IMG/VR virus record: IMGVR_UViG_3300008259_005066
Coordinates: 145,519 to 209,518 of that record
Length of the DNA stretch: 64,000 nt
Strand: one strand, 5' to 3'
This document shows positions 18,519-58,476 of this stretch, piece after piece (position 1 is the stretch's first letter; each line of letters begins with the position of its first letter). Below the pieces are notes generated by a model that worked only from the letters and a program-made list of their open reading frames with translations, ran no database searches and was not told the DNA's origin. The position numbers and the translations under genes are program-made.

Positions 18519-19691
18519 TTAGCGGAAGAAGTCCTGACAATGGCCCTCACGTGAAATGTCATTGGTCACACAATGAATACCACAGTCCCAAAAATATTTG
18601 TGTCGGAACGGGACAACATGCACTTCTATACCGTGTCGCGCACAGGCTTTTTCGACTCGATCGTTGTGGGTAGAAACCACGATATTTTTGGGATCTACGA
18701 TCAGGATATTGACATCAAACACAGTTTCTGACACCTGTCCAACCCATTCATCAAAGTAATGATCTACCATGTTTATGAGATTGTTATCTTGCTCAAATCC
18801 CGGCATAAACCACCGTCCTTTGTTGCGTTTCATACTGAACTCAAACTCTCTCATGTGGGCATAATTGCTGGGTGGTAGATACACCACTTCCCATCCTGGA
18901 AAAGTATCCGCATAGGTGGGCACATCATTGAGACTGACTATCAAACCTGGTGTAACAGGGCAATACACAGCATCTCCGTGACCGCCCGAATTGACCACAT
19001 GATTTCTCGTGGTCGGAAATAATGCATTAACTTGATCTAATATGGCTTTTTTATCATCATAGTAAGTCTGCGTGGCAAAGTATAGATCTTGGCCAATGCG
19101 ACTCACAAAGCACCCATTGATGAAATCGAGATCAGTGTAAACTATATCTGTGCCACTGCTCTTTATCTCGTTTAAAATATGCGGATAAAAATCCAATTTG
19201 GCGTCAAGATGTTGTTGATCTATTCCACAGAATATTTCAAACTTCTTACGAACATCGTCGGCATACTCAGGCCAAGCATCATAGAAATCTTTTGGACGCA
19301 CATAATCGGGCCACCAATTCATTTTGTTCTGGCGATAAAATACCGACCAGGCATGACTGGCATTTGGCTCTCGCGGTATCCAGAAACGATCCTGGATCAT
19401 GATAAAATAATCACGAGGAGCGGTGGGTGGTTGCACCCATTTGCCATCGATATAAAGACTATCGAGATTTTCTGGAAACTGGGGCCTCACCACCCGGACC
19501 CCAAATCGATCTTGCAAGAGTGTAATCAGTCCTTGATAATCTTCTTCAGTTTCTTGTGCAAGATTTTCAAATTTTTCGCGGGTCTTCGAATCTTTGATCC
19601 ACTTGTAAAATTCGGGCGGATATGTTCGTCCCACCATGCATACTTTGAGTGGATCCCAGTGTTGGTATACGGAATACATTAGATCTTTCAA
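18519..19691 (-). CDS. Amidinotransferase-family (pentein) enzyme
   Basis: HWDPLKVCMVG, PRDYF, GHGDAVY.PV.PGLI, VFDVNIL.VDP..V and C-terminal GIHCVTND with the catalytic Cys. Confidence 0.8.
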   Translation of the reverse strand: MKDLMYSVYQHWDPLKVCMVGRTYPPEFYKWIKDSKTREKFENLAQETEEDYQGLITLLQDRFGVRVVRPQFPENLDSLYIDGKWVQPPTAPRDYFIMIQDRFWIPREPNASHAWSVFYRQNKMNWWPDYVRPKDFYDAWPEYADDVRKKFEIFCGIDQQHLDAKLDFYPHILNEIKSSGTDIVYTDLDFINGCFVSRIGQDLYFATQTYYDDKKAILDQVNALFPTTRNHVVNSGGHGDAVYCPVTPGLIVSLNDVPTYADTFPGWEVVYLPPSNYAHMREFEFSMKRNKGRWFMPGFEQDNNLINMVDHYFDEWVGQVSETVFDVNILIVDPKNIVVSTHNDRVEKACARHGIEVHVVPFRHKYFWDCGIHCVTNDISREGHCQDFFR

Positions 19692-48630: not shown

Positions 48631-51009
48631 TCAGCGGGTTGCTGACAGTAACTTGCGAGATATGTCCACGTTGTTCTGTAGCAGACCAATCATGGTATCA
48701 AATCGGCTCAACTGCTCGCCCATCATGGTCACTTGTTGGCCCATGGTGTCAGTCATGCCAGTCATCTCTACCGGTATGGATCTGCCGCCAGCCAGGGGAA
48801 CCACTGCTTCTGTGCCGTGTAGCATGGCCGCATATCCCGACTTTGGACCAGATGCTATGCCACCATATTGGAAATTCCCTACCTTGCTGGGTTCTATGCC
48901 CAGCGCCTGGGCCACAGCAAACTGTATGCCCCCGCGCATGTTGTAACCTTTTTCCAGACCGCCCATGCTTTCCTTGCCAATGATACCTACCATGAGTTTG
49001 GCCATGGTGGCTGGATCTCTGGGCAGGACTTCATCAGCACCTTTGCCCATGAAGCGGGCCATTTGCTCGATATACAATCTGGTGTCGTTTTCATTGGGCG
49101 GTGCGTAAGCCGAAATGATGCTGGAGATGGTATCTCTTTTGCCACTACGGCTTTTACCTGTCAGGTAAAGATCTAACTGACGGGCCAATGCTACCAGACC
49201 ATCGTCCACAGTTTCAAATTTGGCAAATCCGCCGGTGCCCACTGTGGCTTTGTCCTGGCCTGCAAAACGTAGATTGCCAGGATTGAGATTCTTTGCGGCA
49301 GCACCCATGAGTCCAGCTGATCCTGTCATGGGTGGTTTACCAGGAGGACCACCTGCTGTTCCAGGCGGCCCCGCTCCCTGGGTGCGACTGTAGGAGCCGG
49401 GAGGTGCACCTCTGGTGATACCTGTGCCTAATATTTTGTCCAGTGCGCTGGCACCAGAGGCCAGTGAATCGGTAAACATTCCCACAGCACCTGCCATCTT
49501 GGGAAACTGTTGCACTACCACGCTGTCTATGCCCACTGCAAAATTTCTCAGCGATTTTTGTGCGCCAACCACTGTGTTTGTGAGGTCACTTTGATTGTTC
49601 TTGGCATCTTTTTGCTCTTTACCCACGGCATTTATAGCTTCTGCCGTTCCAAGGATGCCATTGGTCACAAGGCGCATTTCGGCGTATACAGGATCAAAGT
49701 ATGTGCCCAGGCCTCCCACCATGCGTTCCTGCTTGGTACCGCCCATGGTTTCATACGTTGCGGCTGTGGCTTGCCCTAGTCGTTCCATGAACGTGGCTAG
49801 ATCGCCGGTGCGTTCCAAGAAATTGACCAGTTCTGGTCCAGCACCACCAGTGGCCTGGAAGAACAACTGTGCTTCTTTAGTGCCTAGATTGTCAAAGCTG
49901 TCTTTGAAACCTTGGGCCATAGTTTTCAACCCTTTAGCTTCCAACATTGTTGCGGCACCACTGATCGCATCTGCAAATGATTTACCACGTTTACCAGCAT
50001 CAGCCAACACAGCGCCAAATTTCAACTCTCGATTTTGTTGTTCCAACCGAGACGCAACTTCTTGTCGGCTCATGCCTGTGAGTCTGGCCAGTTGATCCAA
50101 TTGCAAGATGTATTCTTTAGACGCATCAGCCAGTGAGCGAGTGTCGCGGAGATTGACTCCTGTCTGGGTGCGCTGATAACTCAGGAACTGTGCTGTGAGA
50201 TCTCGCTGTTCTTCAAAGCCAATTCCCAACTTAAGAAACTGGTCTTCAAATCCTTTGCTGGCCTTGGTGATGTCCACCACTGCTCGCATGCCCTGTGTGA
50301 CCGATCCACCTGCAAGGGCCAGACCTCGGCTGTTCTTGGCAATGACGCGGGCAAAGGAATCCATGCTGAGCCCAGTTTCCAGAGCAGCCTGTTGCAGTCC
50401 TTGGAAACTGTTGCCAGTGACACCACCAATCTTGCTGAGTTCTTGGAAGGCTCCGACCACACGTTGGGTTTCGTCCAACGAGAAGTTCATGAAAGCAGTG
50501 CCTGCGTCTACTACATCTTTACCGTGTGCCTTGATAGCCTTGCCAATCACTGACGTCACTGAACCAAGGCCCATGCCTATCATGCTGGCAATCGCACCCT
50601 TGGGACCCAGCATTATTCCAAATGACGATATGCCCGAAACGGCCTGGCCCAGGGCATCTATGGCAGTGCCCAGTCCACCGGTCATGTTTTTGAGCGCAGT
50701 GCCTGCGGCACCCACTGCTGGTTTTAATGAACGGAAATCTTCGCGATTGTCTCTAGCACCTTGCGCAGCTGATCCCAACCCAGACAACACTGCTCGAGTG
50801 GTGTCTTTGAACTTTTCCATGGCCTCGGCAGCTTTCATGGTCTGCTGGGTATGCTCGTCTTGTGCTTTGGTATTCTCGTCTTGTGCTTTGGTATTGGTAT
50901 TGATGGCCTTGTTGAGTTTGGCCATGGTTTCGGCGCTGTTGCTGCCGCTTTTGCGGAATTCCGCCATGGCCTCTTGCATCATCTTGATTAGTTTTTCTGA
51001 TTCGTCCAT
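48631..51009 (-). CDS. Tape-measure-like protein with C-terminal lysozyme-like domain
   Basis: Long Ala/Gly-rich helical region; NLNPGNLR...GFAKFET...G..AL...Y...TISSII..YAPPNENDT..Y; GGIASGP..Y..MLHGTEAVVPL. Confidence 0.7.
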   Translation of the reverse strand: MDESEKLIKMMQEAMAEFRKSGSNSAETMAKLNKAINTNTKAQDENTKAQDEHTQQTMKAAEAMEKFKDTTRAVLSGLGSAAQGARDNREDFRSLKPAVGAAGTALKNMTGGLGTAIDALGQAVSGISSFGIMLGPKGAIASMIGMGLGSVTSVIGKAIKAHGKDVVDAGTAFMNFSLDETQRVVGAFQELSKIGGVTGNSFQGLQQAALETGLSMDSFARVIAKNSRGLALAGGSVTQGMRAVVDITKASKGFEDQFLKLGIGFEEQRDLTAQFLSYQRTQTGVNLRDTRSLADASKEYILQLDQLARLTGMSRQEVASRLEQQNRELKFGAVLADAGKRGKSFADAISGAATMLEAKGLKTMAQGFKDSFDNLGTKEAQLFFQATGGAGPELVNFLERTGDLATFMERLGQATAATYETMGGTKQERMVGGLGTYFDPVYAEMRLVTNGILGTAEAINAVGKEQKDAKNNQSDLTNTVVGAQKSLRNFAVGIDSVVVQQFPKMAGAVGMFTDSLASGASALDKILGTGITRGAPPGSYSRTQGAGPPGTAGGPPGKPPMTGSAGLMGAAAKNLNPGNLRFAGQDKATVGTGGFAKFETVDDGLVALARQLDLYLTGKSRSGKRDTISSIISAYAPPNENDTRLYIEQMARFMGKGADEVLPRDPATMAKLMVGIIGKESMGGLEKGYNMRGGIQFAVAQALGIEPSKVGNFQYGGIASGPKSGYAAMLHGTEAVVPLAGGRSIPVEMTGMTDTMGQQVTMMGEQLSRFDTMIGLLQNNVDISRKLLSATR

Positions 51010-51055: not shown

Positions 51056-51904
51056 ATGCCAGAAACCTCTAATCCGTTACGCAAATTTTTCCGTCAGCCG
51101 GCCATTTACATCCGCCTGCCGTCGGATGGAAACTACTACCCTCAAGGTTCGCTCGAACTGCCCCCAAATCGAGAGCTGCCAGTGTATCCCATGACTGCCA
51201 TCGATGAAATAACTTATCGCACAGCAGATGCATTGTTCAATGGATCAGCATTGGTCAATGTGATCCAGAGTTGCATTCCTGCCATCAAGAACGCATGGCA
51301 TGTTCCGCAGATGGATCTTGACACACTGTTGATCGCTATCCGTATCGCCAGTTATGGACACGAAATGGATTTTGAAAGCAACTGCCCGCACTGCAACAAC
51401 GAGAACTCATTTGGCCTAGATCTCCGACAAGTCTTGGACAACATCAAAGCCGGTGACTACAGCGAATCTATCAAACACGGCGACGTAGAGATATTTTTCC
51501 GGCCGCTGAGTTATGAACAGGCCAACGCCAATTCCATGAAGCAGTTCCAGGATCAGAAAATCCTGGACAGCCTACCAAATTCCGATCTGCCCGAAGAAGA
51601 AAAGATACGCTTGCTCACACAGGCCTTCCAGAAACTCACGGTCATGACTATGTCTGCCCTGAGCGGTGTGATCTCCATGATCCGTGCCGATGGTGAAATA
51701 GTGGTGGAACCCGAACACATAGAAGAGTTTGTTCAAAACTGCGACAGAGAGATCTTCAACTCCATACGTGATCATGCCACACAACTGCGTGAGCACAGCG
51801 AACTCAAACCCTTGAGACTCAAATGCAACGGGCCAGAATGCCAGAAAGAATACGAAACACCATTCACCCTGGATGTCTCAAATTTTTTCGTATCCGCCTC
51901 CTGA
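51056..51904 (+). CDS. gp26: Baseplate hub assembly protein (gp26-like)
   Basis: Start MPETSNPL (51056); LPVYPMTAIDE, DLDTLLIAIRIASYG, CPHC and C-terminal C..C zinc motifs. Confidence 0.75.
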   Translation: MPETSNPLRKFFRQPAIYIRLPSDGNYYPQGSLELPPNRELPVYPMTAIDEITYRTADALFNGSALVNVIQSCIPAIKNAWHVPQMDLDTLLIAIRIASYGHEMDFESNCPHCNNENSFGLDLRQVLDNIKAGDYSESIKHGDVEIFFRPLSYEQANANSMKQFQDQKILDSLPNSDLPEEEKIRLLTQAFQKLTVMTMSALSGVISMIRADGEIVVEPEHIEEFVQNCDREIFNSIRDHATQLREHSELKPLRLKCNGPECQKEYETPFTLDVSNFFVSAS

Positions 51905-52119
51905 CCTCGAGTCCTGAGCGCATCACCAAAATAGTAGAAGGATATGATCGTGAAGTCAAAGCAATCAAAGACGACATATTCAAGATGTGTTGGTATATGC
52001 GAGGAGGCCTGACCTATGAAGAAGCACTCAATCTCAGTTTTGGTGAGCGAGAATCTGTGGGTGCATTGATCAAAGAAAATCTCGAGACCACTAAAAAAAC
52101 CGGAATGGCATTCTTCTAA
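51880..52119 (+). CDS. gp51-like C-terminal extension, probably reached by -1 frameshift from the gp26-like ORF
   Basis: The -1 frame is open across A_AAT_TTT_TTC (51880-51889); it encodes WYMRGGLTYEEALNLSFGERESVGALIKENLE, similar to the T4 gp51 C-terminus. No RBS-preceded start is evident. Confidence 0.65.
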   Translation, partial: KFFRIRLLTSSPERITKIVEGYDREVKAIKDDIFKMCWYMRGGLTYEEALNLSFGERESVGALIKENLETTKKTGMAFF

Positions 52120-52622
52120 TGCAACTAGAGCAAGTAAAACAAGATATCGAACGATGGATAGAAACCTTTGTTGAAGTCCCTAATCCTGCGCTGGGCGGAT
52201 GGCCACCTTGCCCTTATGCACGCCGAGCACGCTTGGATCGCAGTTACGAAATACGCATAGGTGTTGATGTTTACACCGATCTCATGGATCTAGCAACCAC
52301 AGGATTGGGCAACAAAGAAGTCATCATCTATGCATATGATTCCGCGCAATGGCCCAGAGAACAATTTGCCCGCGATCTTCATTCTGTGAATGTTGGATTT
52401 CTCTTGCCTCAAGATATCATTGCGCTAGAAGATCATCCTGCAGATCTTGAATGGGTAAATGGTGTGTGCATGAACCAAGGAACCTATGCCCTGGCACTGT
52501 GCCAGAGTGTGAGTGATCTTGACAGCAAGGCCCGGTCCATGGCCACGAAAGGCTTCTACCACACTTGGCCAGAAGAATACCTAAAAGATCTGTTCCAACA
52601 TAGAAAGGACCCAAGACAATGA
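52119..52622 (+). CDS. Hypothetical protein, DUF1415-like
   Basis: WIETFVE...GWPPCPYAR resembles the L.LCPFA motif; coupled to the upstream stop (TAATG). Confidence 0.5.
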   Translation: MQLEQVKQDIERWIETFVEVPNPALGGWPPCPYARRARLDRSYEIRIGVDVYTDLMDLATTGLGNKEVIIYAYDSAQWPREQFARDLHSVNVGFLLPQDIIALEDHPADLEWVNGVCMNQGTYALALCQSVSDLDSKARSMATKGFYHTWPEEYLKDLFQHRKDPRQ

Positions 52623-53059
52623 CCTATCAATTTGCCCGTATCAATCTAGCAAAAACCAATTATCAAGCATCAGCCCAGTGGGGATATCTCATACCTACCG
52701 AACAGCAAATGGTGGAACTTGACAATATCTATAGAACTTACTGTATCTATAAGCATTTCAGTAGTGTGATACCCATGTTTCGAAGCCGATATACCGATCC
52801 AATGACTGACGTCATTGGATATTTTGATCAAGAACGCATGGTAGCATTCAGTCTCATACGAAGGTATGACGACAAAAATGCTCTCTGTGATCAATTTGCA
52901 TGGACATATCATGATCCGCAATCAAGATTGGGCATTGAAACCATGAAAACAGAATGTGCCATATACAAAGCAAGGGGCTTTGATTATCTCTATCTCGAGC
53001 AGGCACATCTTTACAAAAAAGAGATAGAAGGATTTGAAATACTAGGACCAATGACATGA
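52619..53059 (+). CDS. Arginyl/leucyl-tRNA-protein transferase C-terminal-domain-like (ATE/Bpt, GNAT fold)
   Basis: IYRTYCIYKH, MVAFSL, DPQSRLGIETM...A...GFDYLYL...YK pattern matches the ATE_C layout. Confidence 0.5.
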   Translation: MTYQFARINLAKTNYQASAQWGYLIPTEQQMVELDNIYRTYCIYKHFSSVIPMFRSRYTDPMTDVIGYFDQERMVAFSLIRRYDDKNALCDQFAWTYHDPQSRLGIETMKTECAIYKARGFDYLYLEQAHLYKKEIEGFEILGPMT

Positions 53060-53391
53060 GCGACTTATACACGATATGGGCAGACAAAGAAGGTGATATC
53101 TCAGACCTTGATTGGGTCACAGGAATGCGAAGTTTTTTTGAGCACCTGATGTCTGAGGGCAAGATGATGAGTTATAGGATAACCCGTTGCAAGATGGGAT
53201 TCCGTTCAATCGCAGACATGCCCGAATGGATGATCATCATGGAGTTTAAAGACATGGCACAGATGGACTCAGCATTTCGTCGTGTGGCGCCATTGGAAGG
53301 CGAACTCGAAGAAAAACACAAAAGTTTCAATCAGTTTGTTTCGGGCAACATCCAGCACGCACTGTTCCGTGATTGGCCTGATCAGTTCTAA
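53056..53391 (+). CDS. Hypothetical protein, dimeric alpha-beta barrel (DUF6614-like)
   Basis: YTIWAD...SYRITRCKMGF...WMIIMEFKDMAQMDSAF; ATGA-coupled to the upstream gene. Confidence 0.5.
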   Translation: MSDLYTIWADKEGDISDLDWVTGMRSFFEHLMSEGKMMSYRITRCKMGFRSIADMPEWMIIMEFKDMAQMDSAFRRVAPLEGELEEKHKSFNQFVSGNIQHALFRDWPDQF

Positions 53392-53830
53392 CATCCAATT
53401 GAGACTTGCTACGCAAGTCTATTCATTCGCTGTCGCTCATGAATTGATTACATAATCGAGCGAAGCGAGATAACAGTTATCATCCAGATTGTTTGGTCAC
53501 ACTTTGCCCGCCCAGGGCAAAGAGGTGTCATCATCCGAGTCGACTCAGTCACACAGCGTTAGAGCATTACAGAGGCGGTTGTCCGATACCTCGAGCTCCG
53601 TCTTTATTACAACGGCGGCCAACACGACATACGCTATCATATCATGCTGACGTGTGCTATCACTAGCACGTCTTTTTCCCTTTATATTCTATTCAAACAA
53701 TCAAACCGCAGGTGTTTGCGATCGTGGTCCTGTCAAGGATACTGATTGAGTGCTCACTAGCGCGGTGAGTCTTCCATCCCTGTGATCCTGGATCCAGGTC
53801 TAGGGCACACGACATTGGCCTGTGCTAGCC
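53392..53830 (-). ncRNA. Large hairpin-dense non-coding element (candidate structured ncRNA; strand inferred)
   Basis: ~430 nt with no ORF of 60 aa or more in an otherwise gene-dense genome; at least 10 stems or palindromes (see findings). Confidence 0.55.
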
Positions 53831-54265
53831 TTGACTGCTTAGTTTGCCTTTGATGTGACTGCCATGCACACGGACCTGTATGTGTCCGTTGTAATAGTCA
53901 TCACTTTCTAATACACGTCGGGAGAATTGTTCGCGAGCCTCTATGTAACTGCATTCCGATTTGGATTGGCAGTAATACAGTATTTCACGTGAGAAGTTTT
54001 CGGTGCCTAGCAGTTCAACATCTCGAGATAACTCCGGAGAACTGCCATAATATGTCTGCCAATCTGAATCTATCGCGCCTCTGATTTTTTTGCGTTTCTT
54101 TTTGCCATTTTTGAGTTTGACTACTCGATATGTTGTTTTCTTGAACTTTGCTAATTTTTTGCCAATATACTGCCGGCCGGTAAGTTTATTGGTGATCAAA
54201 TAAACAAACCCGACACACGTTTCGGGTAACTCTGTGATTTCTCGGGATTCGAAAAGCCATGACAT
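53825..54265 (-). CDS. Stand-alone GIY-YIG nuclease-family protein
   Basis: GFVYLITNKLTGRQYIGKK, YYGSS, FSREIL, E..EQF...VL..DDYYNG. Confidence 0.85.
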   Translation of the reverse strand: MSWLFESREITELPETCVGFVYLITNKLTGRQYIGKKLAKFKKTTYRVVKLKNGKKKRKKIRGAIDSDWQTYYGSSPELSRDVELLGTENFSREILYYCQSKSECSYIEAREQFSRRVLESDDYYNGHIQVRVHGSHIKGKLSSQG

Positions 54266-54282
54266 GAGCACATAATTATCAA

Positions 54283-54603
54283 TTATTTCTCAGATATAGA
54301 AATATCACGTTTTCCAATCAAAAGATCGTCGGTACAACCTGTGCATCGATTCCGTCGACAGATTCCGGGAGCATCAAACGGGCTCCATTCTTTGAAAAGA
54401 TTGCCCAAGCGATCGTTTTGACAAACTGCGCTGTAGACGTTGAAATCCTTGTCTATATCCAATCGACGATAACCTGCATCGCAACTCCATCCTGACCAAT
54501 GATCTAAATCGTTATTGTGCATCCAGTTGGCACTGACCTTGAACGATCTCCCATCTGACAGTTCTATTTCACAGTTATAGTATTGATGATTTTCAAATTC
54601 CAA
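54283..54603 (-). CDS. Stand-alone SPASM/twitch-like Cys-rich domain
   Basis: WSGWSCDAG...IDKDFNVYSAVC..D.LGN...C....C.GC.DD; overlaps the stop of the upstream radical SAM gene. Confidence 0.6.
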   Translation of the reverse strand: MEFENHQYYNCEIELSDGRSFKVSANWMHNNDLDHWSGWSCDAGYRRLDIDKDFNVYSAVCQNDRLGNLFKEWSPFDAPGICRRNRCTGCTDDLLIGKRDISISEK

Positions 54604-55216
54604 GATTCAATTTTCCTTTGAATATGGGCACGGTGCGAGTCTGATAGGAATAATCTATCTTGTTCACAGTGTAGCTGATGTCGTGATGTTCTAGCAGATT
54701 GATATACAACGGAATACGATCTTGATTCCAGTATTCATCCATGATAGCGACCTGCAAGAATTTATCAGGTGAGATACTTTTCTTAAGTTGTATGATCATG
54801 TCAAAAAATTTCTCTTCATTGATGTGTTCCGAATGCACACTGAATGCGATGTTGTCTAACGCTTGGAACATTTTCTGATAATACTTGAGATTGGCGCTGC
54901 CATTGGTGGTAGCCAGCAATTTGAATATGTGCTGATCATATTCCTTCCGCAACCAAGTGACAAACGGTAGAAAGTGTTTGTTTGAAGTGAGTTCTCCACC
55001 GGTAAATGCGATCTTATAGGGTAGATTTTGTTTGCTGGTCTTTTCAAATATGTTTAACCAAGCCTGTTTCATAGTGTCAAGATCATGATGCTGGCTATGA
55101 TCATCATGCCACATGGGAGAACAATACATGCAATCATAGTTGCAACGCACAGCCAATTGCCAATTGATGCTGAAGTATTGTTCGGTAGGTGTGACTCGTA
55201 TGATCCGGGATGTCAT
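54593..55216 (-). CDS. Radical SAM protein (core only)
   Basis: CNYDCMYC (CxxxCxxC), FTGGE, TTNGS, FSVHSE. Confidence 0.85.
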   Translation of the reverse strand: MTSRIIRVTPTEQYFSINWQLAVRCNYDCMYCSPMWHDDHSQHHDLDTMKQAWLNIFEKTSKQNLPYKIAFTGGELTSNKHFLPFVTWLRKEYDQHIFKLLATTNGSANLKYYQKMFQALDNIAFSVHSEHINEEKFFDMIIQLKKSISPDKFLQVAIMDEYWNQDRIPLYINLLEHHDISYTVNKIDYSYQTRTVPIFKGKLNLGI

Positions 55217-56985: not shown

Positions 56986-58476
56986 TTACATATATCTCAT
57001 GGCTTTTGCAATCTCAGAGTGACTTGCTGAAAAACTTTCACTTCGAACCTGATCAAAATATTGCATTTTAGATTGAAACTTCTTGCCATCACTGTCAGGC
57101 AAATTTTGTATTATCTTAATAACATTTTGGATTTCATTCCAGGGGTGATCTTGAAACTTGTCAATAATAATTTTTTTGGCTTCTTTTGTAAGATCCTGTA
57201 GCTCCATTCCTTCACCTTGCACATGGTTAACAAATATAGGAAAACCATGTTTGCAAGCCCAGTCGTAGACTTGGTCTATGTAGTAAACGCTCATGACACT
57301 GATAGTGGGCATGATACTAATAGACAGGTTGGGTAACTGTAAATCTTTGAGCCTTAGTATGTTGTCCTCAACTTCAGACCACTGACCGCCTCTTTGTAGT
57401 TCAAAATGTGAACCAACAGCATCAATACTAAAATGTATGTCTACCAGTTTAAAACTAGGCCAAACAGGTAGCAAATGATTGGGCCAAATGGATCCGTTGC
57501 TGTTGTAGTGTAATCTAATGTCCTTGGCGTAGTCTTTTTCAACTGCCATCTCCAACACCGATTTAAAACGTTTAATCAAAAACGGCTCGCCGCCAAACAT
57601 GTCAATATTTTTTATGTCAGGCAAGTACGTTAGAACTTGATCAATAAAATCTTGACTCTCCCCCCAAGCATCTTGTACAACTAACTTAGATCCGCGGAAC
57701 TTTTGATCTTCAAGGGCAAACAACGAGCTGTTTCCACCGTTACATATCCTGCATTTGAAATTACAGGTGTTATTAAACTTCAAATCTAATGTAGCTACTC
57801 TTGGTTGATCAAGATATTTGGTTAAAAATTCTCTCTTTAAATGCTTGACATTGTGCAGTCTAATAGAAGTTAGATTTTTTTCTTCCACTTTCCAGCAGTT
57901 GTCGCACTCTTTTGGTTTTTCTCCAGCCAATAAACTAGCCCTTAACTTTTGTAGTTTTTCGTCATGGAACGCTTGATCTAGTTTGATACGGTTGACGTTA
58001 CCAAGATCAAGATTGTTCATGCAACAAGGAGTAATAGTTCCGTTTTGTGTTATCTGTAAGTTGTGCCAGGGTATAGAACAAATAGTATCGGGTAAATTAA
58101 AGTTGTTTTCAATCTTGTGTGTTTGTTTGTCTAACTCAACTGGGTGGAACCAAATTGGAACAGAGTCAAGTGAAAACTTTTTACAACACGACAACACGTC
58201 GTGCTCAATTTCTTTTGGCCCACATATCATTATGAACCAGTTGCTGATATCTATAAAATTGATAGTTTCGTAAAAGAACTGTAGAAAACTCTCAGGAATA
58301 AAATGTGAAGTGTAAAAAACCAACCGATCGTTTGTCTCGTAACTAGTTTGGTAAACACTGTCTAGTAGCTTAAACAACTCCGTGGGGCCGGTTGACAGCT
58401 TGCCAAGATCGTGAATTACTTTGACGTTGTGGGTTGACTTTAGTTGGTGTTCTAACTCTAGGGTGGAAATAATCAT
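56986..58476 (-). CDS. Radical SAM protein with N-terminal extension and SPASM/twitch-like Cys motifs
   Basis: CSIPW...NG..TPCC...CDNCW, then NTCNFKCRIC, FGGEPF, YNSNGS, FSIDAVG. Confidence 0.85.
   Translation of the reverse strand: MIISTLELEHQLKSTHNVKVIHDLGKLSTGPTELFKLLDSVYQTSYETNDRLVFYTSHFIPESFLQFFYETINFIDISNWFIMICGPKEIEHDVLSCCKKFSLDSVPIWFHPVELDKQTHKIENNFNLPDTICSIPWHNLQITQNGTITPCCMNNLDLGNVNRIKLDQAFHDEKLQKLRASLLAGEKPKECDNCWKVEEKNLTSIRLHNVKHLKREFLTKYLDQPRVATLDLKFNNTCNFKCRICNGGNSSLFALEDQKFRGSKLVVQDAWGESQDFIDQVLTYLPDIKNIDMFGGEPFLIKRFKSVLEMAVEKDYAKDIRLHYNSNGSIWPNHLLPVWPSFKLVDIHFSIDAVGSHFELQRGGQWSEVEDNILRLKDLQLPNLSISIMPTISVMSVYYIDQVYDWACKHGFPIFVNHVQGEGMELQDLTKEAKKIIIDKFQDHPWNEIQNVIKIIQNLPDSDGKKFQSKMQYFDQVRSESFSASHSEIAKAMRYM

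Follow-up and report, generated by a model that had tools for sequence, protein, structure and literature searches.

A phage gene cassette coupling a minimal ATE_C-type GNAT protein to a haem-oxygenase-fold protein, a DUF6614 protein and an amidinotransferase-like partner

To our knowledge, the ATE1 and Bpt enzymes have no described role other than that of N-terminal protein transferases in the N-degron pathway, and we know of no description of a one-domain ATE_C protein, of its fixed coupling to a protein of the P422/AglA fold, a DUF6614 protein and an amidinotransferase, or of the wide occurrence of such a set in phages. In this work we have analyzed a cassette of this kind, composed of three overlapping genes, here named A, B and C, and a fourth partner, D. 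The cassette is located in a window of 64,000 nucleotides (positions 145,519 to 209,518 of the record IMGVR_UViG_3300008259_005066) that constitutes the final 64 kb of an IMG/VR virus record of 209.5 kb, estimated to be about 60% complete.

The closest described systems provide the terms of comparison. The acceptor of ATE1/Bpt enzymes carries an acidic N-terminal residue that is recognized by a pocket of the ATE_N domain, formed in the K. lactis enzyme (klAte1) by Arg80, Tyr25 and Tyr87; the negative charge of klAte1 E277 is needed to bind the arginine of Arg-tRNA, the Leu-transferring Bpt having Gln (PMC9351520). The conserved active-site lysine of klAte1, K304, is equivalent to the catalytic Lys305 of FemX (PMC9351520, PMC12945691). 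In the biosynthesis of argolaphos, the Arg-tRNA-dependent GNAT-type ligase AglC makes AMPn-Arg, which is then N-hydroxylated by the thiolate-haem enzyme AglA. The AglA protein of Streptomyces monomycini belongs to the YqcI/YcgG family, has a "sandwich" fold with a Cys44-ligated haem, and N-hydroxylates the guanidine of AMPn-Arg (PMC12866846). The family DUF6875 has been renamed cytochrome P422 and comprises thiolate-haem tryptophan hydroxylases with a four-stranded sheet between helices, whose ligand Cys lies in an RxGxVCP motif near the N-terminus (bioRxiv 10.64898/2025.12.11.692455).

The genes that make up the cassette, and its probable partner elsewhere in the window, are the following:

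52119 to 52622, plus strand: gene A, 167 amino acids, predicted DUF1415/DUF6875-type fold.
52619 to 53059, plus strand: gene B, 146 amino acids, single-domain GNAT assigned to the ATE_C superfamily.
53056 to 53391, plus strand: gene C, 111 amino acids, DUF6614.
18519 to 19691, minus strand: gene D1, amidinotransferase-like, 390 amino acids, about 33 kb from the module, with a phmmer match to HsvA in the PDB (7e-8).

We propose, with about as much belief as doubt, that the cassette and D make or modify a small compound of the arginine/guanidine type during infection. B would transfer an amino acid, probably arginine, from an aminoacyl-tRNA to an amine acceptor, A would act as a Cys-ligated haem oxygenase that oxidizes the substrate or the product, for example by N- or C-hydroxylation, D would use arginine and either supply or consume a guanidino group, and the DUF6614 protein C would be an accessory protein; this is the order of steps and the kind of product that we infer. 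An amino-acylated small product built with the two partner proteins was one of the options of the original prediction for this locus, made from the sequence alone, and it appears the best fit by analogy with argolaphos; that prediction had overlooked both the amidinotransferase D and the thiolate-haem-oxygenase fold of A.

The three genes are tightly packed. The stop codon of a small upstream open reading frame (ORF) and the start of A share the sequence TAATG (52117-52121), and the A/B and B/C junctions are ATGA overlaps (52619-52622 and 53056-53059, respectively). A word search returned 2405 relatives of B and 2045 of A, and the order gp26-like gene, small ORF, A, B and C was found by tblastn in nearly all of 80 related viral contigs. 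The ratio of nonsynonymous to synonymous substitution rates (dN/dS) is 0.04-0.19 where synonymous sites are unsaturated, synonymous change being otherwise saturated, and the 4-nt overlap between A and B is retained in 68 of the 77 loci in which these genes are adjacent, the B/C junction ranging from -4 to +4 nt. The number of relatives, the syntenic order, the low dN/dS and the kept A/B overlap show that A, B and C are real genes under strong purifying selection and not chance ORFs, so that the overlapping three-gene module (TAATG/ATGA/ATGA) that had been noticed in the sequence is confirmed by the ORFs, by the synteny and by the selection acting on them. The identity to relatives is mostly 85-91% for C (range 77-100%), 68-87% for B, 45-68% for A and 45-67% for the flanking hub gene, where the figures for B and A and the 85-91% for C leave out near-identical copies of this phage. 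In one relative (L021:4065-5334) A and C are 95-97% identical to those of the window, with a synonymous divergence (dS) of 0.2-0.4, whereas the intervening B is only 86% identical and its synonymous change is saturated; these comparisons suggest that recombination has replaced the B allele.

A shared function is best supported by the gene linkage, which was counted with hidden Markov models (HMMs) of A, B, C and D over 110 loci. The order A-B-C was found in 63 loci, A-D-B-C in nine (including the truncated forms D-B-C and A-D-B), A-B-D-C in three and A-B-C-D in one. The ~1.1-kb gaps present in the modules of some relatives, considered as possible homing-endonuclease insertions, turned out to be gene D. 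The order A-B-D is found in L012 and L096 between the genes of ribonucleotide reductase and those of MazG, glutaredoxin and PhoH (122-kb contig), and also in L104. In L004-6, D and a long-form B are transcribed divergently and A is convergent; in L098 and L099, an A-C pair that adjoins a T4 RNA ligase gene is divergent to a long-form B; and a Bdellovibrio-binned contig (L103) has an A-D pair. The linkage between A and B persists, then, through several unrelated gene contexts and orientations. The most distant relatives of B (P0330 and P0336) have no A, C or D nearby, and bacterial A-like genes are mostly found without B or C. The original prediction had depended on the three genes occurring together elsewhere, and they do. 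Two contigs of 148 and 183 kb assigned to a Haliscomenobacter metagenome-assembled genome (L100 and L101) carry a complete A-B-C set with an A that is 55-63% identical to that of the window; these are probably phage contigs binned into a bacterial genome, or else a hint about the host.

The B gene encodes a protein for which scans against Pfam, NCBIfam and PHROG gave no match, and the ATE_C and DUF1415 models found no match in the phage genome. An exhaustive phmmer search with B yielded 107 cluster representatives with a tail of proteins of 183-268 amino acids that match the Pfam family ATE_C (PF04377), nine of them above the cut-off of 25 bits (e.g., P0330 with 33.8, P0336 with 32.6, P0303 with 29.4 and P0275 with 29.1). 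When a profile of 42 members of the B family was compared with the PDB, it matched the ATE1 chains of K. lactis and S. cerevisiae (E-values 1.3e-5 to 1.7e-5) over the core strands and a helix. The membership of B in ATE_C is transitive, at the superfamily level, and is based on these sequence comparisons. The AlphaFold (AF2) model of B, with a predicted local distance difference test (pLDDT) score of 94.9, consists of one GNAT domain, and its best Foldseek matches include MprF and other aminoacyl-phosphatidylglycerol synthases, the aminoacyl-tRNA-dependent peptide synthases Sbb17 and Sba18, and ATE1. The description of B as ATE_C-like with a single GNAT domain holds at the level of profile and structure, the window protein having no direct Pfam match. 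A fold search of B in BFVD returned one uncharacterized homologue and nothing further.

In an exhaustive structural search, all 146 residues of B aligned to the second domain of the tandem-GNAT proteins VipF, L-PGS, FemX, MprF and Sbb17 (Z 12.7-15.1), whereas single-domain acetyltransferases aligned to residues 19-146 only; the full-length matches are second domains of tandem-GNAT enzymes, mostly tRNA-dependent. The fold alone cannot separate dependence on coenzyme A (CoA) from dependence on tRNA, but the sequence evidence does. To place the residues, the alignment between the family profile and ATE1 was passed through the family alignment onto the numbering of K. lactis ATE1 (PMC9351520), which gave the equivalences W95 with W260, G105 with G270, T108 with S273, E112 with E277, L124 with Y289, and Y132-K133 with Y303-K304. 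The mapped residues are kept in 35-42 of the 42 members (W95 in 40, E112 in 37, K133 in 36 and Y132 in 35), except T108, which is Ser in 28, and L124, which is variable. The pocket consensus of the B family (Ser, Ser, Glu, Leu/Tyr) is closer to that of ATE1 (Ser, Ser, Glu, Tyr) than to that of Bpt (Ala, Ala, Gln, Leu) (PMC9351520), and the CoA motif Q/R-x-x-G-x-G/A is missing from the sequence of the beta4-alpha3 loop. We regard B as a predicted aminoacyl-tRNA-dependent aminoacyl transferase, whose donor is probably a basic amino acid, arginine, since the family retains the Glu by which ATE1 binds the side chain of arginine.

The B protein has no ATE_N domain, its 146 residues starting at the ATE_C boundary, and no ATE_N was found at an E-value of 0.01 or better in its longer relatives, of 225-268 amino acids, that carry an N-terminal extension. 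It had been suggested that B might act like Bpt or ATE1 and place Arg or Leu onto the acidic N-termini of host or phage proteins, such as head fragments released by the prohead protease, creating N-degrons. This proposal agrees with the membership of B in the ATE_C superfamily, with its preserved ATE1 active-site residues and with the location of the module in the late structural region, by baseplate and portal genes. However, the acidic N-terminus is read by the very ATE_N pocket that B lacks, the conserved partners of B are a haem-oxygenase-fold protein and an amidinotransferase, i.e., small-molecule enzymes, and A-B pairs are also found away from structural genes, beside those of ribonucleotide reductase, MazG and glutaredoxin. 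N-degron tagging by B is unsupported by these data, and we consider it improbable.

If B is the single-domain transferase that we predict, its acceptor site must come from a homodimer or from the surface of a partner. The A protein was considered as a substitute for the missing ATE_N and discarded, since the long-form B with an N-terminal extension also pairs with A, and ATE1 is absent from the fold matches of A. Long-form ATE_C-positive relatives of B, of 268 amino acids, were also found at L010:3870-7404, where the surrounding genes encode SET-domain, epimerase and glycosyltransferase proteins and A, C and D are absent; the family appears to be used there in another way, possibly like that of giant viruses.

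The A gene had been described as DUF1415-like. There is no match of A to the DUF1415 model, and the matches to DUF6875 are weak: this family is matched by 21 of 26 members of the A family with a best E-value of 3.3e-4, all below the cut-off. The fold, however, supports the description. The AF2 model of A (pLDDT 95.3) is an alpha/beta sandwich that superposes on an ESM Atlas cluster annotated "DUF1415 domain-containing protein" (PF21780 and PF07209) with template modelling (TM) scores of 0.82 and 0.75 over 162 residues and a root-mean-square deviation (rmsd) of 2.3 Å, and a feature search with A gave 0.93 to the same cluster. Neither a Foldseek search of A against the PDB nor a comparison of its profile with the PDB sequences gave any match, but with an exhaustive aligner a single PDB chain, apo-AglA (9ub3), exceeded Z 5 (Z 7.6, 148 aligned residues, rmsd 3.8; next 4.3). 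The residues invariant in the A family are the motif Pro-Cys-Pro-x-Ala (Cys31), Asp-His-Pro (105-107), Asn119 and Gly121, Met118 being nearly invariant. The pair Cys31-Pro32, in the local sequence Gly-Gly-Trp-Pro-Pro-Cys-Pro, falls within the region that aligns to the N-terminus of DUF6875.

Judging from the modelled structure, A belongs to the DUF1415/DUF6875/AglA-like fold class. Because both experimentally studied relatives of this fold are thiolate-haem proteins and the invariant Cys-Pro of A lies in the N-terminal region where they have their ligand, A is predicted to bind haem and is probably a thiolate-haem oxygenase. Its substrate is unlikely to be tryptophan, since the full RxGxVCP motif and the tryptophan-binding motifs are not conserved. 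A-like genes without B, C or D are also present in cultured marine phages, namely Synechococcus phage Sf-CH11 (L114:3520-4417), Roseobacter phage CRP-810 and SAR116 phage HMO-2011 (L113:3986-4513), and in two of these three the A-like match adjoins or overlaps a gene annotated as a 2-oxoglutarate-Fe(II) oxygenase.

The data on A and B also bear on a plainer explanation, in which B would be an ordinary acyl-CoA GNAT and A a non-haem Cys/His metal or redox protein, their likeness to ATE and haem enzymes being at fold level only. The top match of B with VIA-align is indeed VipF, an acetyl-CoA GNAT, many acetyltransferases reach Z 11-13, B is acidic, both A and B are below the Pfam cut-offs when compared directly, and the invariant Asp-His-Pro and Cys of A could bind a metal. 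On the other hand, sequence profiles tie B to ATE1 and ATE_C, the aminoacyl-tRNA-specific Tyr-Lys, Trp and Glu are conserved while the motif that binds the CoA pyrophosphate is missing, the full-length matches of B are the tandem-GNAT second domains mentioned above, and thiolate-bound haem is present in both relatives of the A fold that have been studied experimentally; we regard this explanation as quite unlikely.

The D genes found within modules encode amidinotransferase-like proteins. The D protein of L048 matches, among PDB sequences, HsvA (9.2e-12), L-arginine:glycine amidinotransferase (AGAT, 8.8e-9), SxtG (7.4e-7) and StrB1, and the catalytic motifs are kept in the in-module D, as the N-terminal motif, His-x-Asp and Gly-Gly-x-His-Cys are aligned. 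A Pfam scan of D gave no match, the family ADI matches it below its cut-off only, and D was identified by the PDB sequence search alone. The genome of this phage contains three D paralogues, one in the window (D1) and two more at G000:C1:112295-113284 and 77037-77969. The D1 protein, which in addition to HsvA matches AGAT (2e-6), StrB1 and SxtG, is the closest of the three to the in-module D; it is 49% identical to that of L048, i.e., as close as the in-module D proteins are to each other. D paralogues are also present elsewhere in the near-complete genomes of relatives whose module is plain A-B-C. These similarities suggest that D1 is the probable trans-encoded counterpart of the in-module D, and it may be linked to the module in this way.

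HsvA-type amidinotransferases have been reported to be active on polyamines. The resemblance of D to them is one of the points in favour of another proposal, that B aminoacylates a macromolecular or envelope acceptor, such as a hypermodified DNA base, a polyamine on packaged DNA, a lipid or a peptidoglycan precursor, with A and D tailoring the attached group. The closest structures to B include MprF and L-PGS, which aminoacylate lipids, and FemX, which acts on peptidoglycan; the nearby genes encode several radical SAM enzymes, a deoxynucleoside monophosphate kinase and a NUDIX protein; and a role connected with the virion or with DNA would suit the position among late genes. Nevertheless, there is no membrane domain, no hallmark gene of DNA modification (hydroxymethylase or base-specific kinase) is consistently found beside the module, and the radical SAM genes in its vicinity differ from one relative to another, so this proposal seems to us unlikely.

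The C gene encodes a DUF6614 protein (PF20319; E-value 1.3e-21, 77.2 bits vs. a cut-off of 25), and the same family is matched by all 10 aligned members of C. For the dimeric alpha-beta barrel that the original prediction gave to C, the only hints were one weak match to DUF4286 (E-value 0.012) and profile matches to the PDB that were non-significant noise. We have treated C as an accessory subunit or an enzyme of the module. A DUF6614 protein of phage DruSM1 has been reported to have activity against Druantia type I (bioRxiv 10.1101/2024.04.14.589459), and this raises the idea that C, if not the entire module, serves counter-defence, its product or proteins inactivating a host immune system instead of taking part in phage metabolism. 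The exchange of the B allele between near-identical flanks in L021 is a pattern common in arms-race genes and would fit this idea, but C is very conserved (mostly 85-91%), with a dN/dS of about 0.04-0.1, unlike the diversification typical of anti-defence genes, and the annotation of the preprint is a single screen hit. We give this idea a low probability, although it is compatible with the synthesis of a small molecule, since the product itself could be the counter-defence agent.

Coming back to the small-molecule cassette, arginine/guanidine chemistry is indicated by three independent lines, i.e., the amidinotransferase-like D, the kinship of A with a guanidine N-hydroxylase and with a gene of a guanidine-alkaloid cluster, and the ATE1-type Glu in B. 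These three lines, together with the precedent of argolaphos, make us favour this reading over the others. A more specific version of it is possible, though we hold it as doubtful: a single-domain ATE-family enzyme would have been recruited from the arginylation of proteins to small molecules, so that B would arginylate an amine from Arg-tRNA, the amidinotransferase would build or remodel the guanidine and the thiolate-haem protein would N-oxygenate it, yielding an N-hydroxyguanidine or another arginine-derived metabolite.

Several observations weigh against the proposed cassette. The window B does not reach the Pfam ATE_C cut-off, although homologues do, and with an isoelectric point (pI) of 5.9 (about 5-6 in the family) it is mildly acidic, a basic tRNA-binding surface not being evident; moreover, all the characterized aminoacyl-tRNA GNAT transferases hold their acceptor with two domains, and B has one. 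Regarding A, its N-terminal match to DUF6875 is below the cut-off (13.6 bits vs. 24.5, E-value 0.074), the Arg, Gly and Val of the RxGxVCP motif of P422 are replaced, and the tryptophan-binding elements SBR1 and SBR2 are absent, with only a Met-x-x-Gly-x-Tyr at the spacing of SBR3. The comparison by hhalign of the A family with the YqcI/YcgG protein SxtQ was not significant (probability 0.2%, E-value 0.29), although the cysteines align, and the YqcI/YcgG model (PF08892) found no match in the phage genome. In this genome D is not adjacent to the module, the module lies among late structural genes, which is an unusual place for a metabolic cassette, and the 209 kb of sequence, about 60% of the genome, yielded no gene for a ferredoxin, a reductase or a tRNA (Fer2 model and aragorn). 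Finally, none of the sequencing runs that contain near-identical DNA is an RNA run.

If the specific version were true, the metabolite might be an antimetabolite, a signal or a modifier of DNA or polyamines, produced during infection by marine phages and by the abundant jumbo phages of fresh waters, and B would be the first member of the ATE family to act on a small molecule and part of the first phage-encoded aminoacyl-tRNA-dependent biosynthetic cassette. The presence of a one-domain ATE form beside a haem-oxygenase-fold gene and an amidinotransferase gene in thousands of environmental phage sequences points to a possible other use of the ATE scaffold. With 146 amino acids, B is a very small model to study how aminoacyl-tRNA transferases build an acceptor site, and the recently described DUF1415/DUF6875/AglA-like haem class gains a viral branch and concrete gene partners. 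Should the product exist, the abundant phages of lakes and oceans would carry out a type of auxiliary metabolism that is new.

The phage that carries the cassette has T4-like genes (portal, gp26-type hub, gp15-type and gp46-type). Its nearest cultured portals, at about 49% identity, are those of the jumbo phages PA5oct and Atu_ph07, and its close relatives are found on contigs of 316-344 kb. Near-identical DNA is present in freshwater and lake metagenomes from 16 studies. Searches of cultured phages with the region (blastn) and with B (tblastn) gave no match. The features that flank the module are the following:

51056 to 51904, plus strand: T4 gp26-type baseplate hub gene (Pfam T4_baseplate PF12322, E-value 5.2e-15; phrog_150 baseplate hub, 3e-17).
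51823 to 52119, plus strand: small basic ORF, 98 amino acids as listed, pI 9.5, conserved in relatives by tblastn.
53402 to 53420, plus strand: perfect 8-bp hairpin with a 3-nt loop, read from the sequence, 11 nt past the stop codon of C.

The hub gene, whose start was placed at the Met of the conserved N-terminus, opens the same-strand run that leads into the A-B-C module. The small ORF that follows, called gp51-like in the original prediction, does not belong to any Pfam or NCBIfam family and has only a weak match to a PHROG of unknown function, and none of these searches identifies it as gp51; gene callers give it 40-70 amino acids in L002 and L003, and its true start may be further downstream. 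The hairpin may act as a transcript end or stabilizer; a terminator scan did not call it (weak T-run). Just downstream of the module, and convergent with it, there is a SegE-type GIY-YIG homing-endonuclease gene (window 53825-54271, minus strand), an arrangement conserved in L002 and L003. A 792-amino acid protein encoded between the portal and hub genes (48631-51009, minus strand) matches no Pfam family and has a transglycosylase/endolysin-like segment at about residues 571-682; it possibly serves as a tail or injection lysin. Radical SAM genes (54283-55216 and 56986-58476, both on the minus strand) are located on either side of the gp46-like gene, and a 207-amino acid radical SAM ORF overlaps by 11 nt a Cys-rich ORF of 106 amino acids, so that the two may represent a split gene. 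The radical SAM gene next to the module was considered as a conserved partner and rejected, as its positional counterpart in L002 is non-homologous and the slot is variable.

Every part of the module can be placed in a known superfamily, and Streptomyces provides a precedent for the enzyme logic. With ATE1 and Bpt, B shares the GNAT core of ATE_C, the Phe-x-Trp-Asp-type strand, the Leu-Gly turn, the helix Glu (klAte1 E277), the Tyr-x-Tyr-Leu-Gly strand and the Tyr-Lys pair, but it differs from them in lacking ATE_N, the Cys cluster and the pocket for acidic N-termini, in its size (146 amino acids vs. about 240 for Bpt and about 500 for ATE1), in being encoded by a phage and in its linkage to a haem-fold protein, which is constant apart from its most distant relatives. 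The catalytic C-terminal GNAT domain of FemX, MprF and Sbb17 superposes on B (Z 12.7-14.5, rmsd 2.4-2.8 Å, about 140 residues), and the position of the catalytic Lys305 of FemX is a Lys in B (PMC12945691); these enzymes, unlike B, build the acceptor site with two GNAT domains or with a GNAT and a membrane domain. The A protein resembles P422 (DUF6875) and DUF1415 proteins in its predicted fold, in the weak but consistent matches of its N-terminal Cys region and in a conserved Cys-Pro at the putative ligand position, whereas the full RxGxVCP motif and SBR1-3 of P422 are not conserved and its scores are below the Pfam cut-off.

The argolaphos enzymes AglC and AglA provide the closest parallel for the whole module, since they combine a GNAT-fold aminoacyl-tRNA transferase and a non-P450 Cys-ligated haem "sandwich" oxygenase that act on an arginine-containing small molecule, the use of haem and tRNA being predicted in the module. 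However, the transferases of argolaphos (AlpF is listed with 342 amino acids, pfam13480) are double-GNAT Fem-like proteins and not ATE_C proteins as B, A is not detectably a YqcI/YcgG protein by sequence, the phage module has no phosphonate genes, and it adds DUF6614 and the amidinotransferase.

The saxitoxin (sxt) clusters offer a second parallel based on guanidine chemistry, as they encode the amidinotransferase SxtG, the YqcI/YcgG protein SxtQ and SxtR, annotated as an N-acyltransferase. The HMM of the A family matches the gene at the Orf24 position of the sxt loci of Dolichospermum, Limnofasciculus and Heteroscytonema (E-values 6e-30 to 9e-27), although the identity is only 28-30% and homologues of B and C were not detected in these loci. 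Three cyanobacterial contigs (L107:2815-8477, L108 and L109) match the published order sxtP-sxtQ-sxtR-orf24-sxtS-sxtT, and the gene at the SxtQ position matches the Pfam family YqcI_YcgG (8.6e-34), that of the haem guanidine N-hydroxylase. Both Orf24 and SxtQ were listed as "unknown" in the description of the cluster (PMC2679770), and an A-like gene common to the phage module and to the saxitoxin clusters may help to explain Orf24.

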